A model generated the notes under the pieces. The model saw nothing but the letters and a program-made list of their open reading frames with translations, ran no database searches and was not told the origin of the DNA. From Trichoplax adhaerens (lineage: Eukaryota; Animalia; Placozoa), in assembly GCF_000150275.1 (NCBI RefSeq), contig NW_002060947.1, positions 8,402,043 through 8,466,042 on the forward strand: a stretch of 64,000 nt of DNA, read 5' to 3'. Made by a program: the position numbers and the translations under genes. The first letter of the stretch is position 1, and each line of letters opens with the position of its first letter. This document shows, piece by piece, positions 3,883-42,648 of this stretch.

Positions 3883-6745
3883 TAGACATAGACGCCGAAC
3901 TTTTACTGTAGGAAGCTGGATATAAAGTTTAGTAAGGGAAATCTCGCAACTTACACTGTTGGAATGTAAATATTAAATTATGTTACTATCATGATCAAAA
4001 TAAGCTCGTATACTACTAATATTAATAGTACTCGATGGAATCATTTATGATGTTTGCTATGCTATCAAAAAGGGAAACTAAGTTCTTAATCATTGATTTG
4101 ATAGACTCTTAGTTTTGATGAACTGAATGCGCTATACTGCACATGATACCACTTTTCTAAATGAAACAAAATTATTGTTCTATTCGATTAAAATTTTATT
4201 TATGGTATTATTTTTGAAACTTATTTTGGAGATAAAGATACAGTCTTTTTAAGATTGCTTGCAGTTACTGAAAGCAAGCTTACTAGTTGAATAACTATAA
4301 GCAGGTTTGTGATATCATATGTTGTAGTAAGGGGGCAGCTGTAGGCATTCAAAGTTATATCTGATGAGACTTATAAATGCGTTGATGTTAAGATTTTGAT
4401 GGTAGTATGGTAGATTCGGCTGTATGGCATTGATGTTTGACATTTGTTACTTACCCATTGAGATGGTAATTTCGATAGTTTGCACTACTGCTAATTTGTC
4501 ACTGTTGAGAAGGAAGAGCATAAAAGCCATCATTACAATACTGTACATGCATATCAATGGAGATTTTTATTACTTTCGATAACTATTACATGAAGCTGGT
4601 TAGGAAAGTGTTAAGTAGCGTGCCTTTTCCGAAATATTTTCTTACAAAATCATGAAAAAAATATCATCAATTAAGATCCAGGATATAACATTTTCAAATC
4701 CATTAGATATTTTATGACTGAAAATGTAAATAAATTCATATCCATCCATCCAATTTTGAATACTATAGAAGGTCCATGGAGATAACGACTATATTGTAAA
4801 ACTGTTATTGACGTGATTGCATGGAAATATTCACGTTTACATGAAATTGCGATAATTTCATACAGTGTTAATTGCGTATGCTATTGAATTAGGCTACAGT
4901 CATGACCGGAATAAATGTAGGAACTGGTTGTTTCATTTGCTCGGATATCTGCTAATTTTATGTTAGTTTCACCCGATTCTATAAATAAATGCAAACTACC
5001 AATGTAGTTAGTTTCGAAGTTTAATCATGTGAATATATTAAAAACAAACAGTAATTTCTACTGAACTTATTTCTGAAGGAATAAATCGGTGCTGGAGATT
5101 TATAGTAACTACTACCACTGCATAATACTTGATTTAAAGCCATGAATACTGATACATCATTAATATTAGGCTGCCACAACTTAATTTTGATATCCCATCA
5201 AGCGGACATCTAGCTTAAAAAGATATCATGTATTTCACTATTCTCTTCATCCAATCCAGTAAAATAAATGCCGAACTCCGAGACCAATTTTTAAGTTAAT
5301 TTCAAGACAGAAATCTAAAGAAAGTCTTTCAGGGATTTATTAAATAGTAAATTCTGCGAACGTGATAACGTTATGATTGATGTTGGCATATTTCTACGAA
5401 AAGCAATTTATAAAACTGTTTAGCCCAATACAGTGAATAAGCCTAGAATCTCAACTCTCATTTTTGTCTCCTTTCCAAATTGAATCTAATGAAAAGTTTT
5501 CATAAATTAATTGAAAATTTTAGGTTGCCATGACCGTTCGTAAAGATAAAATAAGCCAACGTTAGAGATCTATCTTAATTAAGCTCAATTACTTAATTGG
5601 AAAGATTAAAGTAAAAGTAAACTAAAAGTATATCAATGAATATATTATTTTATGCCTAGAAAGAGTATCAATTTCTATACTCATATTACAGTCATTTAAA
5701 ACCATAGGTAAATTAATTCTATTTTGAATAGTTCGGTTCAGCGATATTCTTGACCCGTAGTTAAGACAGACTCGTTAAATATCTTATTAATTGAGAACTA
5801 GAAATTCAATATTAATATTAAAAACTATAAGCAAAAGTAATCTATCTGATTAAGCCTAGCTATGTGTATATAATGAAACAATGGCTTATATTGATTAATT
5901 TTATTTTATAACCAAATAAAGTGAGTTCAACAATGTTATTCTAATCTTGGAAGCTATAAATAAAGGCAATGTGTCATTAATTGATTGGATAGTTTAGCCA
6001 TGTGGGTACTACAAATCAATAGTTTATACTGATTCATTTTTGAGTCTAATGGAAAATCAATAACAGAATCCTATACTTATTTTAAAACTATCACTAATAA
6101 TAGCAGTTCGGAACTTAAATCAAAACGCTTTAAGATGAGGTAGAGAGATAAATGATATAAGATATTGACCTGTATCTTTAATAAAATCGTTATCTGCGCT
6201 AAAATCTTTCCCAAACACTAATTTTAAAGCTATAATTAACAACACTCTGATAATAACTGATCAGCAAGTGAAAGAAATGGATTGAATGAACAATAGTATA
6301 CATCCAAAAAGGCTTGTTAGATGGTCTATATACTCGTACATGAAAGGAGTGCGCAACATCTTGATAATAAATTGTCCACCAGATGTTGGATATTCTGCCA
6401 ACGTGGTGGAATAGCAGTGGACAGTCATAAATGCCGCATGATTCGATATACAATCATACAGTATATAGTTTTAGATTATTGAACATAGAACAAAATCTTT
6501 TGTTATATTACTCAGGCATGATCATGTCTAGGTATTATTACACAAGGCCATTTGATCTTAGTTAATATTAATATACGAGTTCTTGAAAGAAGCCCATTTG
6601 CACGGCATTCGAAAGAGTAAAAAATAGTGAAATAGCGTTATCATTCCAATTATAGTTTAAATATCTATTCCGTTATTAGTAACGAGCAGTTGCATCTTGA
6701 CATTTTTCTTTTTTACAAAGCTTCAGCCATTAACCACTTTTCTAT

Positions 6746-9344
6746 ATGAAATTTCTAAGTATTACCGATAAAGGCATTTCTTGTGTTTTCTGGTTAACCT
6801 TTTTCATCAGTTCCATTTCCATTGCTTTAAATCTAGCTGTTATTCTAGGCCACACGTCGTTACCAGGTAAGATAATTTCACGTCATCATTCACCAGTAGT
6901 CAAAACCACTTCGAAAATAGTGTCGAATAACTTCTCATCGATCTACGAGTAAATTCTATTCTGAATCCGTACAACTTTCGATTCAGTATTTGTGTCTGAT
7001 TCTATTTCTATAAGGTTATAATTTATAAAACTATAATTACAAATAGAGATTAAACTCATTTTATACTAATGATGTTATATAGTTGAGAAATATCGAAATT
7101 CATATTTACATTCACAATTTAGTCATCAAAACATGGGAAAAACTTAGAGGGCCGCCAGGTATACCTGGTCCGCCGGGGCCTCGTGGAGAGCGTGGTTTTC
7201 GAGGTAGGATTTGAATATCAGATGAAATACTTTATATCACTAGTAAGATTAAAAGCTCTATAACCAATGATGAAATAATACGTATTCCAGCAGATTATAC
7301 AAGCATTTCTATACAATATTTTATCACTTTAGAAAGTTTATAATACGCTGTAATAAAATTCAGGATAGATCTGATCGGACTATTGCATATTGGATAAACA
7401 GATATTTCACTTTTACCATAAAGAATTGTAAGAAAATTGGGGGGGGGGGTACATCATCATGTTCACGAGCAGTAAAAGTAAATTATAGTTGCCAAAATAA
7501 TCAAATTTTAACGTACAAAGAAGTCTATAGAGGTCTTATGACACCGCTTCAATATCATCCTTATTTTATGCAATCATTTGATAAGCTTTCTTTCTCGATT
7601 TCGTAGTGTAATTTAAATTTTGAATCAACTCTTTAATCTTATAATAATCATAAGAGCACTAATTCAGGTTTGTATCGTATCTCTAGGAATAACAGGACGC
7701 CCTGGAATGCAAGGATTAAAAGGAGAAAAAGGTCAGATGAGTGTCTAAGAACCAGATTTAAATCTAAACATTCGATTAGGACAATTTAGTGGAATTCCCT
7801 GCAATAAAATATTAAACTACTTTACTTCCCATTTTCACATGACGAAATTGAAATTATTACTTCCATTTCATATCCACTATTAACTAATAATTGCAATAAA
7901 GTAGATAAAATGATCATACTTAGTATTACTGAGAAAAATTCATAGCTTTAATTCCCATAAAATCCATTTTTAATTATTAGGCGAATCTGGATTGGGTGAT
8001 AAAGGTATGTTTGGCGTAAAATCGCACGTTATTCTATGGTGCATTAGGATGTTCACATTACCAAATCAGTCAACATTACAGAGAATTTATTGCATAGACT
8101 AATCATAAGTTCTGTAGAAATCAAATTGAAACATCTATTCCTGCAATAGCCTCGTTTGTAGTATAAAAATCATTATTATTAAATTTATTTACAGTATAAT
8201 AATTCTATACTTCAGGAACGAATGCTGGGCCTCCAGGGCCTCCAGGCCCACCAGGACCACCCGGGCCTCGAGGTAAGAGAAACTTTAAAATTACTCGTTA
8301 ATTTATGTCAGATTGAAAGTAGTCTAATTTTATTGTTGCCGAATTTTTATAAAAATTTGTGGATAAGGTGTAATACAGTTAAATAAATGCTATAGCATGA
8401 GATTTAGAACAAGCAATATATATGTAACTGATATCTAGGTCCACCAGGACCCGGTGATGGAGGACAGGAGAATGAGGTTGATCCAATAGGAATATTAGGT
8501 GAGTCAATTGCAATTTCACCTTATGGTCTTCTATAATGTGCCTCTATTTTAAAGATTCTCCAAACAATATTTTATGTTAGATGTACAAAAACGAATCGAT
8601 CTACAAACACAAAATGTCGGCAATAATGCTAATCAGTGGGCCGCTGAAGGCAGCACTGATAAAATGGGCAACCAAGGAGAGGAAGTAAAACAACAACAAT
8701 TTCAGCAGCAGGTATTGCAGCAACAGCAACAACAATTGCTATTACAACAACAATTACAACAACAGCAACAACAGCAGCAGCTGCAGCAGCAATCAGTTCA
8801 ACAACCACCACTACAACAACAACAACAACCAGTATTCCAGCAAGTGCATATACAGCAGCAGCAACAACAACCTATGCAACAGCAGCAACCGCCTGTTCAG
8901 CAACAAGTACCAATACAACAGCAGCAACAACCTCCTATTCAGCCACCAATACAACAACAACCAATACAGCAGCAACCTCCTTTACAGCAACAACCAATGC
9001 AGCAACAGCAATTGCAACAGCAGCAACAACAACAGCAACAGCCACCTATGCAGCAGCAACTTAATTTTGACCAGCAACAGCAAATGCCACCAGTGCAAGC
9101 ACAACAGCAGCCACTGCTACAACAACCTCAAATGCAGCAGCAACAACAGTTTCAGCAGCAAGCAGCTCAGCAACAACAACAATTTCAACAGCAAGGGGCC
9201 AACATGGGCGGCCAACACACAGGCCAAGCAGATAATAACTTTGCAAATGCTGGTATTCCACCAGGATCAAATATAGGAGGTGCAAATGCTCAAGACGGTC
9301 AACAAATTCCCCAAAATGTTATGCAAGGAGGAGCCAGAGTTTAG
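6746..9344 (+). CDS. Signal-anchored or secreted short-collagen protein with Gln/Pro-rich C-terminal domain (383 aa)
   Basis: Seven exons joined by phase-1 GT-AG introns: 6746-6866, 7123-7203, 7687-7731 (45 bp), 7981-8004, 8216-8272, 8439-8498, 8581-9344; total 1152 nt. Encodes a hydrophobic N-terminal segment, (Gly-X-Y)12, an interruption, (Gly-X-Y)6, then a poly-Q/PQ tail. Confidence 0.85.
8689..9194 (+). repeat. Coding CAA/CAG-rich low-complexity tract (poly-Gln with interspersed Pro)
   Basis: Mixed CAA/CAG codons inside the last exon of the collagen-like gene. Confidence 0.9.
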
Positions 9345-13200: not shown

Positions 13201-13427
13201 TGATGAAGAAACCTTGGATATAAGGGAGATTGATTCGATTCCATCATCTTGCTATGCTTTTACAGTATAATGCTATCTATCGCCTTAACTAGATAATCTA
13301 TTGTTGATGACCATCAAGCGGTAGTTGGATGGCCGTAATATACCTGTAATGGAAATGTAGCAGATCGATTACCAACATAACCATGGACAACATGACTTTG
13401 AATAGATAGAACTTTACTATCGCCCAT
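10227..13427 (-). CDS. PDXK: Pyridoxal kinase (ribokinase/PfkB superfamily)
   Basis: Ten coding exons: 13427-13344, 11809-11755, 11634-11530, 11399-11316, 11214-11180, 11096-11011, 10904-10756, 10681-10557, 10477-10411, 10339-10227. Motifs [51 protein letters not shown] and ELRLVQS. Confidence 0.96.
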
Positions 13428-13867: not shown

Positions 13868-15058
13868 TGTGGTACATTACTGCACTGTCCTGCATGTTTC
13901 GTTGAATTTAAAGTCAACAGTGTCAGTGGACCTCGGTGTACTGTGTGCTGTCACTTTTATTGACAGACTCGCTTCGACTTCGATTGTGAACTGCTTTCGT
14001 GTTCAATGCGCTACAGTTGTACAATCATGTTACCTAATGACTGCCTTGTATGTTTCGACTCGTTGAATTAAAGTCAACAGTGTCAGTTGACCTCCGTGTC
14101 CTGTCACTTTTATTAACAGACTCGCTTCGACTTTGAGTGTGAACTGCTTTCGTGTTCAATGCGCTACAGTTGTAAAATCATGTTGCTTCATTACTGCACT
14201 GTCTTGGAGGTTTCGACTCGTTTAAAGTCAACCGTGTCAGTTGACTTCCATGTCCTGTGTGCTGTCACTCAGACTCGCTTCGACTTTGATTGTGAGCTGC
14301 TTTCGTATTCAATGCGCTACAGTTGTACAATCATGTTACCTAATGACTGCATTCTCTTGTATGTTTCGACTCGTTGAATTAAAGTCAACGGTGTCAGTTG
14401 ACCTCCGTGTCCTGTGTGCTGTCACTTTTATTAAAAGACTCGATTCGACTCGTTTAAAGTCAACCGTGTCAGTTGACTTCCATGTCCTGTGTGCTGTCAC
14501 TCACAGATTCGCTTCGACTTTGATTGTGAGCTGCTTTCGTATTCAATGCGCTACAGTTGTACAATCATGTTACCTAATGACTGCCTTCTCTTGTATGTTT
14601 CGACTCGTTGAATTAAGTTAAAGTGAACAATGTGTGTTAACCTCCGTGTCCTGTGTGCTGTCACTTTTACAGACTGGCTTCGTCTTTGAGTGTGAACCGC
14701 TTTCGTGTTCAATGCGCTACAGTTGTACAAACATGTTACTTCACTGTCTTGTATGTTTCAACCCGTTCAATTAAAGTCAACCGTGTCAGTGGACCTCCAT
14801 GTCCTGTGTGCTGTCACTCACAGACTCGCTTCAACTTGGAGTGTGAGCTGCTTTCGTGTCCAATGCGCCAGAGTAGAGTGGTACAATCATCTTGCTTCAT
14901 TACTGCGCTTTCTTGACTCGTTTAAAGTCAACCGTGCCAGCTGACTTCCATGTCCTGTGAGCTGCCACCCACAGACTCGCTTCAACTTTCGTGTGCACTA
15001 GAGGTCGTACAATCATGGTACAGTAGGCTACTGCACCGTATGCTTCGACTCGTTGAAT
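13868..15058. repeat. Tandem repeat array A (~150-165-bp unit, about 7.5 copies, two alternating subtypes)
   Basis: The unit marker AAAGTCAAC (one copy AAAGTGAAC) recurs at ~13910, 14070, 14224, 14381, 14456, 14620, 14773 and 14924. Segments 14214-14380 and 14446-14614 are nearly identical. Confidence 0.95.
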
Positions 15059-39754: not shown

Positions 39755-42648
39755 ATGATGGTGGCGGACACGAGAGCACCATACTACTCTCAGTATAGAA
39801 AAGTTCAGAATAAGAAGGAGCTCCACGATATTACCACCTGGCTCATGTTGATCCGATCGCCGTGGCTTGCAAGAATTGGGTAAGATCGCTTCTAGCCAAT
39901 TTGTCATTTTGAATGTAGATTATGTTATGTTGAAAATGGATTGATGCAATATCGAATCTATTCAATTCGACCGACCTACGAGGTCAACAGTGTCATCGCT
40001 TAATAGGCTGTGAAAAGAATGTAGATCACCAGCAGAAAATACGAGTAGAATAGTTTGTGCTAGGTGGAGAGTGAGGACAGCAAAGCGTGCAAATGCTGTC
40101 TTGTTTTGATACATCAATAGCCTCATTCACTTTGAATAGGGTAGGTAGTAAAGCTGTTCCGCAATTTATTGTATGGATAGGTTGTATAGAAGGAAATGAC
40201 ATACAACTTAAGATTAATATCCAATCTAAAACAGTTGATAAGAATAGGCAAATGCATAGATTAGGGTTAGATAAGACATGTTTTGACAAGTTCGAGTATA
40301 GTCATCGCAGCTGAAAAGTAAAACTAATCATCCATTGGAGATTGGATTTGCATACAAAGTCCTGTAAGTTCAAGTGATCTGGTTCATAGTCTTAATGTGG
40401 TCAACAAATGGGGTAGCGTATTAAATCCGATATGATCCCGAACATCGGCTGTAAGAAATGTGACCTGTCTACCAGAGCTTGTTCGACTGCTATGTTAGGT
40501 ATCTCAAATCGATATAGAACCAGCAATAGAATCTGCCATGATAAAATTTAAAATTTTTGATATCAATGACACGATCAGTAGTGTTAGTTGAGCAAGTTTG
40601 ACTGTAATGATATTTTACCAGTTGAGACAGCAGAGCATTTTGCACCATGACTTTGGCCGATACGGATAGATCAATGCACTGAGTTGCTTTGTAGCTAGGA
40701 CAAGGGATATGCATGTATCAAATTAGTCAGTTGTATTTGTACACATGCTCGGAAATAATGCCATATGTCCAATTCTCCATCTTGAATGAGATAATCCATT
40801 CTTATGGTTGTACTGCATCCTCCTTCATGAAGTCAATGAGACACAATATTATGGTTTGTGGAAGGAATATGGATGCATCAAAGATTGGAGTTTGATCCCA
40901 GTTGTCTTTGTACAGTACCTGCAGTTCGAAATGCTACTACTGTAGATATTGTATTCTCCTTCGGGAATCTGGCAGTGTGTTATCATTTGCATAATTACTA
41001 TAGCTGAATGAAAGCGCAGAGTTATCTTGCAGGACAGTGTATTTTCTATGCACAAGATTCGAAATAGTTCTAGTTATTGTATCCATCTTGATGAACTGTA
41101 AGTGGATGAGACACTAGATCATCATTGAAGGAAGCGATACAGATGCATCATAATTTTGAGCTGGATTTTCCTCATACAGGCAGTTTGAAAATAGTGCTGC
41201 TATATGTTGATCACTCTTTGTTAATGGAATATTCTCACAAACACAATTTAGGTATCACTCCTTGACTCTGTTGACGAAATCGGTTATGGCTTCTAATGTT
41301 GAAATAAAAGCTAAAGTTACAGATATTGAAAAATTAAAGCATTTAGCGAAAGAAGTTTCTGGCCAACCTGGTAAACTCATTGAACAGGAAGATACCTTTT
41401 TCTTATGTGACCATGGTCGACTAAAGGTAATGCTTTTAAACGGATTTTAGCGCTCATAGTTAATCGGAGTTTGGATAAGCAATGCATTCCGAAATAAATA
41501 ATATCCCCCTCCTCATTGATCGTCTTATTAATTAGTTGCGAAAATTTCCAAATGGTCAAGGAGAGCTAATATTTTATAGCAGGGCTGATCAATCTGGACC
41601 CAAGCTATCGAATTACCATATCACTAAAGTAACTGTAAGTCAATCATTATACGTAAAACTTGACGCGCAACTGCGCCTACTTTAAATACTCATGTTTAAG
41701 TTTTGCTACGATTATGGTCATTGCGTGCACAAATGTAAACCGTGTCAAATTCTTTCTATCCAATTTAGGAAAATACCGATGATTTGATTCATACGCTAGA
41801 TTTAGCGTATGGAATTAGAGGTACCCCTTTAATACGCGTATATTTATATTGCGACAATAATATTAAATTTTTATGAATAGTTGCTTGATTAGTTCAGTTC
41901 GCTTGGGAATTAGAACTTCTCCGTTAGTATTTGGCTATGATTGCATCGTATGTACAAATAATTTTTTTCGCCTGTTAATTTAACACGCTACAGGTGTCGT
42001 TAAAAAGAAGCGATATCTGTATCTTGTTGGTCAAACTAGAGTCCACGTTGATACTGTCGATGGTTTAGGGAACTTTATGGAACTCGAAGTAAGTAGACCT
42101 TTGAATTATCCACCGATATGAGTTTATAATGGAAGATATACCAATAAGATATTTCCATACACTAGTTTATTCAGTGATAGTAGAATTTCATATTTGAAAT
42201 AGTGTCTCAAAATAATTTGACTGAATTTTTGATTTCTTGCTAAATTTCACTTTATTACATAAATCACTTCATTACCAAGGACTATTTATGTCTATCAAAT
42301 ATTAATAATATCCACCATCGGTTGACCATCTAAGCTACAAATATGATCTATTCTGAAATAATAGTACATCATGATAATCATTTCATTAAAAGAACTAACA
42401 AGACTTTTGTGTTGTCACAAAATTACATTCAGTAATATCACTAAACTATATTTGTAAGATTAGCAAGCTCATATCATAACAGAACAAAGTCAGTTCATTG
42501 CATATTGATATTGTAGGTAGTTATGAAGAAAGGACAAAGCTGCGAAGAAGGACAGGCTATAGCCGAGGATTTAATGGCTAAATTGGAAATAGCCAAGGCA
42601 GAATTGTTAACGTCTGCCTATATTGACATGTTGCAACGTAAGAGTTAA
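39755..42648 (+). CDS. CYTH-superfamily protein, class IV adenylate cyclase (CyaB)-like, copy 1
   Basis: Exons 39755-39879 (in-frame leader, start uncertain), 41252-41426, 41536-41634, 41769-41820, 41994-42088, 42517-42648. Motifs NVEIKAK, QEDTFF..GRLKLR, ELIFYSR..GPKLS, VVKKKRYLY..TRVHVDTVDGLGNFMELEVV and AYIDML. The core begins at ATG 41286. Confidence 0.92.

Follow-up and report, generated by a model that had tools for sequence, protein, structure and literature searches.

Several animal proteins carry a short collagen stalk. That of mannan-binding lectin has a hinge-like break, similar to the one described below; ectodysplasin-A (EDA) has about 19 Gly-X-Y triplets with one break; and CTHRC1, like the longer run reported here, has 12 triplets. 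Among non-bilaterian animals, the minicollagens of hydra have 14-16 triplets (PMC2289959), and the matrisome of Nematostella includes short "collagen-like" triple-helix proteins without other domains (PMC12549020). In published surveys, the collagens of the placozoan Trichoplax are collagen IV and spongin (Fidler et al. 2017, PMC5395295). This animal has very little visible matrix, and a putative fiber-cell cluster recognized by RNA-seq expresses matrix genes (PMC8639732). Here we analyze a collagen-like gene at positions 6746-9344 of a 64-kb window of the Trichoplax adhaerens genome (64,000 nucleotides; NCBI RefSeq assembly GCF_000150275.1, contig NW_002060947.1, positions 8,402,043 to 8,466,042 of the forward strand). 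To judge from its sequence, this single-copy, seven-exon gene is real, and its product is very probably a small secretory or membrane protein of collagen-like type that ends in a long Gln/Pro-rich tail.

A seven-exon gene with a collagen core and a Gln-rich C terminus

Reading of the sequence and a script agree on seven exons on the plus strand, at 6746-9344, which join in frame into 1152 nt, that is, 383 codons and a stop. The initial annotation had proposed a 383-residue protein from seven exons, and we recovered the same number of exons and the same length. It was also correct that the open reading frame (ORF) track reveals only exons 1 and 7; this holds at the default length, and exons 2 and 3 also appear when the minimum is 30 amino acids. 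All six introns run GT..AG, with lengths of 256, 483, 249, 211, 166, and 82 nt; introns are short in this window, which has a base composition of 32% GC. The GC content of the exons is 0.36-0.72 vs 0.25-0.30 in the introns, and an in-frame TAA at 6731 stands 15 nt 5' of the ATG at 6746. At every exon boundary the codon is split after its first base, so that all are phase 1. At the four collagen-to-collagen junctions these split codons are restored as GGA, GGC, GGA, and GGT, glycine in all four, and the Gly-X-Y register therefore continues across the introns. Two alternative splice sites were considered and rejected: an in-frame acceptor for exon 2 at 7149 has a weaker signal, with a poor pyrimidine tract, and a donor for exon 3 at 7741 is weaker and also breaks the Gly register. 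Intron 2 contains a run of 11 G at 7439-7449, within AT-rich surroundings.

The collagen region is made up of two perfect runs separated by a short break. Residues 50-85 form 12 perfect Gly-X-Y triplets. After residue 85 come G-L-G, which is one residue short, GDK, and G-TNA-G, which is one residue long; because these breaks of -1 and +1 residue offset each other, the register is restored. Residues 95-112 then add six perfect triplets, five of them GPP, and the collagen region ends near residue 119. By script count, proline occupies 9 of the 18 X positions and 9 of the 18 Y positions of the perfect runs, four of the five arginines stand in Y, and K-G-E occurs twice (GLK-GEK-GES). Work on collagen peptides has established that proline in X and Y, arginine in Y, and K-G-E stabilize true triple helices; generic Gly/Pro-rich low complexity lacks them. 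Uninterrupted Gly-X-Y runs in which imino acids are frequent at both X and Y are what the sequence definition of a collagen-like protein describes, and they are what we find here.

Gly-X-Y runs that reach four triplets or more occur only three times across the six frames of the window, vs 0.04 expected in block shuffles. All three lie inside this gene, on one strand and within 1.1 kb, and a chance origin of the collagen exons is excluded. Exon 2, the only collagen exon long enough to scan, matches the Pfam Collagen family (PF01391) with 18.8 bits and E 0.0014, under the cut-off of 27.2. At the DNA level, exon 5 has a 9-nt period over 5.2 copies (Tandem Repeats Finder).

Upstream of the collagen region the protein has a sole hydrophobic stretch, residues 11-34 (24 residues). 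Its Kyte-Doolittle 19-mer maximum, with a mean of 2.08, falls at residues 17-35, and all 19-mers above 1.6 begin at residues 10-24. The preceding residues 1-10 carry K2, D8, and K9, and residues 35-49 form a linker to the first triplet. The whole protein has one cysteine, C13, and no N-glycosylation sequon; C13 lies inside the hydrophobic segment, in agreement with the earlier statement that no cysteine follows that segment.

Downstream, most of exon 7 encodes a sequence of very different composition. Residues 165-334 (170 residues) comprise 106 Gln (62%), 21 Pro, and only two charged residues, with ten motifs of the form Q(n)P(1-2)[LIVMF]. At the DNA level the tract is built from repeats of 21 and 42 nt whose copies match at 60-75%; these are old and degenerate, not a fresh microsatellite. 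The full order given in the initial annotation (hydrophobic N-terminal segment, 12 triplets, short break, six triplets, Gln/Pro tract, and Gly/Asn/Gln tail) was recovered by script. A Pfam scan of exon 7 (253 amino acids) found no family at E up to 10, which bears out the reported absence of C1q, NC1, COLFI, lectin, and SRCR domains and extends it to any other Pfam domain.

We modeled exon 7 alone with AlphaFold2 in single-sequence mode, which gave a mean pLDDT (predicted local distance difference test score) of 51. Helices are predicted at exon-7 residues 2-21, corresponding to protein residues 132-151 (pLDDT about 56-58), at exon-7 residues 31-70, corresponding to protein residues 161-200 (pLDDT up to 79), and, as a third helix, at residues 317-337. 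Most of the Pro-containing tract is predicted to be disordered, with pLDDT below 50. The helical stretch directly C-terminal to the collagen part is an addition to what had been described, and the model suggests that it is likely a trimerization element.

Features of the collagen-like gene. Positions are those of the window; a slash marks the splice site.
Feature	Position	Strand	Description
Exon 1	6746..6866	+	from the start codon through residue 40 to the first base of codon 41; hydrophobic segment residues 11-34; donor CAG/GTAAGA
Exon 2	7123..7203	+	linker VIKTWEKLR and first 6 Gly-X-Y triplets; acceptor ..CAATTTAG/, donor CGAG/GTAGGA; GC 0.57
Exon 3	7687..7731	+	45 nt, phase 1-1; 5 triplets GIT GRP GMQ GLK GEK; junction codons GGA, GGC
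Exon 4	7981..8004	+	24-nt micro-exon, phase 1-1; GES, G-L-G break, GDK; acceptor TTATTAG/, donor AAAG/GTATGT
Exon 5	8216..8272	+	G-TNA-G break, then GPP x4 and GPR; GC 0.72
Exon 6	8439..8498	+	60 nt; last GPP, collagen end GPGDGGQE, neck start NEVDPIGIL; acceptor ATCTAG/, donor TTAG/GTGAGT (full consensus)
Exon 7	8581..9344	+	neck, Gln-rich helix, Gln/Pro tract, Gly/Asn/Ala tail, stop 9342-9344; acceptor TTTTATGTTAG/
Neck	8583..8684	+	residues 131-164; predicted helix residues 132-151; single dibasic KR 133-134
Gln-rich tract	8685..9194	+	residues 165-334; Pro-free Gln/Leu helix (predicted) 165-204, then Gln/Pro region
C-terminal tail	9195..9341	+	residues 335-383 (49 residues), rich in Gly, Ala, Asn, Gln
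Polyadenylation-like signal ATTAAA	9375..9380	+	31 nt 3' of stop; putative, from pattern search

Elsewhere in the window, two adjacent arrays at 13875-14989, each of 3.5 copies of a ~152-bp tandem repeat with 77-80% matches, have a raised GC content of 0.41 and yield spurious repeated ORFs on the plus strand. On the minus strand, 13317-13410 is the end of a 166-codon open frame that has no Pfam match; we take this end to resemble the N terminus of pyridoxal kinase, an unconfirmed likeness. Also on the minus strand, a 229-codon, Ser/Arg-rich open frame at 19210-19896 matches Pfam IQ, a calmodulin-binding motif, close to its C terminus, with 22 bits (cut-off 20.3). An exon at 41211-41447 on the plus strand has a weak match to the CYTH domain (E 0.0028, under the cut-off).

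Topology, proposed assembly, and the probable join to exon 7

The reading that we favor, with somewhat better than even confidence, is that of a single-copy, lineage-specific gene for a trimeric, short collagen of the secretory pathway that bears disordered Gln/Pro arms. The anatomy of the protein is observed; each step of the mechanism by which it would act is our inference. The N-terminal hydrophobic segment would bring the chain into the endoplasmic reticulum and then either remain as a type II anchor or be cleaved off as a signal peptide. The helices at 132-151 and 161-200, the second of which is Pro-free and rich in Gln and Leu, could form a three-stranded coiled coil that registers the chains as the neck of a collectin does. 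One of the many prolyl 4-hydroxylase alpha paralogs of the genome would hydroxylate the 12 + 6 triplets, and these would zip into a rod of an estimated ~19 nm, with a hinge at the two offsetting breaks. From each trimer would extend three Gln/Pro arms, uncharged, disordered, and ~130 residues long, together with the Gly/Asn tails. Hydrogen bonds between Gln side chains, weak but numerous, and hydrophobic contacts would let the arms associate with one another, as in prolamins and amelogenin, and the product may coat the cell surface or be secreted as a gel or adhesive.

A more ambitious version, which we regard as rather unlikely, would make this a "block-copolymer" collagen specific to the placozoans, a phylum whose visible matrix has long been described as absent. 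A short, hydroxylated triple-helical rod, kept in register by a Gln-rich coiled coil, would display three uncharged Gln/Pro arms, and condensation of these arms would give a gel or adhesive at the surface. If true, this would be a new way to build extracellular material from a collagen module. The protein would also be a candidate substrate for the oversized array of prolyl 4-hydroxylases described below.

Several points weigh against the trimeric secretory collagen that we favor. The gene model is built from the genomic sequence. The donor of exon 3, AAG/GTCAGA, has C at +3, which is off consensus and makes it the weakest of the six donors. The 18-20 triplets amount to a short helix, and the coiled coil is drawn from a low-confidence single-sequence model in which the core positions would be largely Gln. 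Because the CAA/CAG repeats of the Gln tract are open in all three frames, the length of the ORF there proves nothing by itself. By our count, the residues that flank the hydrophobic segment carry about +2 on either side, a balance that gives no clue to its orientation; and long hydrophobic segments with short N termini can insert with a cytosolic C terminus.

Topology is also where the initial annotation went further than the data allow. It had named a signal anchor; the hydrophobic segment itself is plain, but it may equally be a cleavable signal peptide, with an n-region at residues 1-10, an h-region at residues 11-21, and the small residues S23 and S25. The same ambiguity gives rise to the first of the alternatives, which we consider improbable: that a real protein is made without being an extracellular collagen with a triple helix, and that its N terminus lies outside and its C terminus in the cytosol. 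There the Gly/Pro and Gln/Pro regions would form a disordered low-complexity domain, for example as a membrane-tethered condensate scaffold. The flanking charges give no preference for the type II orientation, and the combination of a long (24-residue) hydrophobic stretch and a short N terminus would suit such an insertion. So would the absence of cysteines outside the hydrophobic segment, of N-glycosylation sequons, and of any recognized extracellular domain, and Gln-rich regions typically belong to nuclear and cytosolic proteins. However, Gly stands at strictly every third residue over 12 and then 6 triplets, with the X and Y preferences of collagen (Pro, Arg in Y, K-G-E), and breaks that restore the register and phase-1 exons that split Gly codons are features of true collagens rather than of generic low complexity. 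Moreover, the n/h/c layout of residues 1-25 suits a cleavable signal peptide.

The trimeric secretory collagen also requires that exon 7 be joined to the collagen exons, and the sequence makes this join highly likely. Only 82 nt separate exons 6 and 7, which lie on the same strand. This gap contains neither AATAAA nor ATTAAA and is too small for a promoter, and the two exons should therefore share one transcript. Within the open frame, no AG other than the acceptor of exon 7, which is preceded by a T-rich tract, is compatible with phase 1. Frame 1 alone is open both in the 34 non-repetitive codons that lead up to the Gln tract and in the entire 49-codon tail that follows. Alternatively, intron 6 might be retained or only rarely removed, leaving a 141-residue mini-collagen as the product and the Gln-rich frame as an untranslated downstream ORF or a decaying repeat. 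Read-through of the exon 6 donor would indeed give GESIAISPYGLL and then, after 11 codons of intron, a stop at 8534-8536; CAA/CAG repeats contain no stop in any frame, coding or not; and protein searches found no relative of exon 7. We nevertheless judge this alternative improbable as well. The exon 6 donor has the full consensus, it is paired with a T-rich acceptor at the sole position that fits the phase, and the frame-specific openness on both sides of the repeat is unlike that of the repeat itself. The repeats are also old, and within them an ordered motif combines CAA and CAG with codons for Pro and for hydrophobic residues.

Genomic context and significance

We searched the whole genome assembly (105.63 Mb, 1414 contigs) for copies of this gene and for other collagens. 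Exons 1, 2, and 7 match only themselves, which leaves the gene without paralogs. The codon pattern for four consecutive Gly-Pro-X triplets has exon 5 as its sole match, and the pattern for QQQQPP-hydrophobic-QQ matches nowhere else. A genome-wide scan with the Pfam Collagen family (E up to 10), which scores the best candidates only and thus gives a lower bound on the number of loci, returned a pair of collagen IV genes, exon 2 of the present gene (E 0.23), and one further locus. The further match, at C1410:3769967-3770053 (E 0.0095), was rejected as a 9-nt minisatellite whose plus frame reads GFS/GFP ten times. Besides the two collagen IV genes, this gene is hence the sole collagen-like locus detected among the best candidates scored.

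The collagen IV genes lie head to head on another contig (C1401:1162998-1170072 on the minus strand and 1180375-1186414 on the plus strand). Their triplets are Pro-poor, never with four Gly-Pro-X in a row, and this makes a recent origin of the present gene from collagen IV exons unlikely. By heuristic comparison, the exon phases of the two collagen IV genes are mixed.

The genome also contains at least six tandem, same-strand loci for P4Ha_N, the N-domain of the collagen prolyl 4-hydroxylase alpha subunit, at C1403:1685663-1735078. The capacity for hydroxylation exceeds the known collagen repertoire. The gene described here, which has an unmatched Gln/Pro domain and a triplet run richer in proline than any other in the genome, is an extra candidate substrate for these enzymes and a candidate component of a matrix or coat. 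The suggestion that its tail is a transglutaminase substrate fared less well, as no enzyme is evident: Transglut_core has only one locus in the genome and Transglut_N, the animal-type N-domain, has no match, a weak negative, since control genomes also gave none. The other roles that the initial annotation suggested for the tail, as an elastomer, adhesive, or condensate former, are hypothetical.

If the gene is expressed and conserved among placozoans, it would imply that, at an early stage of animal evolution, low-complexity domains able to self-assemble became attached to a collagen module, and it would offer a tractable target for the study of placozoan adhesion, mucus, or internal scaffolding. 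If it is silent, it is only an unusual gene prediction.

Relatives and comparison with known collagen families

Protein searches were run exon by exon, in databases that may omit this genome and very near ones and with low-complexity queries, which are insensitive. Within this scope, a word-index search with the whole of exon 7 and with its non-repetitive first 40 residues gave no match, nor did exon 7 match the ESM Atlas, and an exact look-up of its 256-residue ORF returned no record. Against the sequences of the PDB, exon 7 had no match at E up to 1, and its two ends had none at E up to 10. The sole HMMER match to exon 7 among 1.84 billion protein representatives, presumably a bacterial FHA-domain protein, was rejected as compositional: it has a Gln/Pro linker, and composition-adjusted BLASTP gives an E of 0.38. 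In the literature on short or transmembrane collagens and the matrisome of placozoans we found no description of this gene. All of these searches agree with the "orphan" architecture of the initial annotation, an agreement that is qualified by the low-complexity query and by databases possibly without near relatives. The gene is apparently lineage-specific. Its low-complexity C-terminal domain is unmatched, and the combination of this domain with a collagen stalk appears to have no counterpart.

The least probable alternative is that the gene belongs, in degenerate form, to one of the known collagen-stalk families (collectin, C1q/TNF, ectodysplasin, MACIT, or CTHRC1-like), and that its globular head has given way to an expanding Gln/Pro repeat; the order of hydrophobic N terminus, short interrupted stalk, and helical neck does fit the head-bearing families, but exon 7 holds no trace of a head domain (Pfam at E up to 10; PDB sequences), no homolog links the gene to such a family, and the cysteines that those families use are absent.

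We now return to the trimeric secretory collagen and compare it with each of the families that it most resembles. The collectins and class A scavenger receptors share with it a hydrophobic N-terminal targeting or anchor segment and a short, interrupted Gly-X-Y stalk, followed by a predicted helix able to register three chains. In contrast to them, it has no C-type lectin, SRCR, or other globular head and no N-terminal cysteines for oligomerization; its C-terminal domain is the 170-residue Gln-rich tract, and no homology was detected. Because there is no head domain, by Pfam, by PDB sequences, or in the AlphaFold2 model, which contains only helices and disorder, the protein falls outside the collectins, C1q/TNF proteins, EDA, and CTHRC1.

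The membrane-associated collagens with interrupted triple helices (MACITs; XIII, XVII, XXIII, and XXV) and EDA resemble it as a possible type II membrane protein with an interrupted collagen domain near the membrane. Here, however, there is one collagenous region of ~70 residues instead of several, the cytosolic part would be only 10 residues, and there is no TNF domain. In place of an RXXR furin site, the sole [KR][KR] site of the protein, KR 133-134, lies shortly C-terminal to the collagen region. Its single collagenous domain, its N terminus of 10 residues, and the lack of a furin site place the protein outside the definition of a MACIT.

The cnidarian minicollagens are likewise small non-bilaterian proteins with a very short triple helix, which here has 12 + 6 triplets. 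Minicollagens, however, are specific to nematocysts and have polyproline stretches and terminal Cys-rich domains, whereas the present protein has one cysteine and no polyproline flank and belongs to an animal without nematocysts. The lack of Cys-rich domains places it outside the minicollagens. The "collagen-like" proteins of Nematostella, compared by description only, are also non-bilaterian and pair a short triple-helical stretch with no further recognized domain; a Gln/Pro tail goes unmentioned in the main text of PMC12549020.

The Gln-rich part has its own parallels. There is no Pfam Gliadin or Amelogenin match and no cysteine in the tail, and the likeness to wheat prolamins and amelogenin is compositional only: a heptad-like motif of Gln, Pro, and hydrophobic residues in a nearly uncharged tail. 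The preCols of mussel byssus, finally, differ in that they have His/DOPA termini, absent here, and a collagen part that is ~10 times longer. Nevertheless, they offer a parallel in how the protein may work, with a collagen rod joined to a low-complexity flank that would set the properties of the material.

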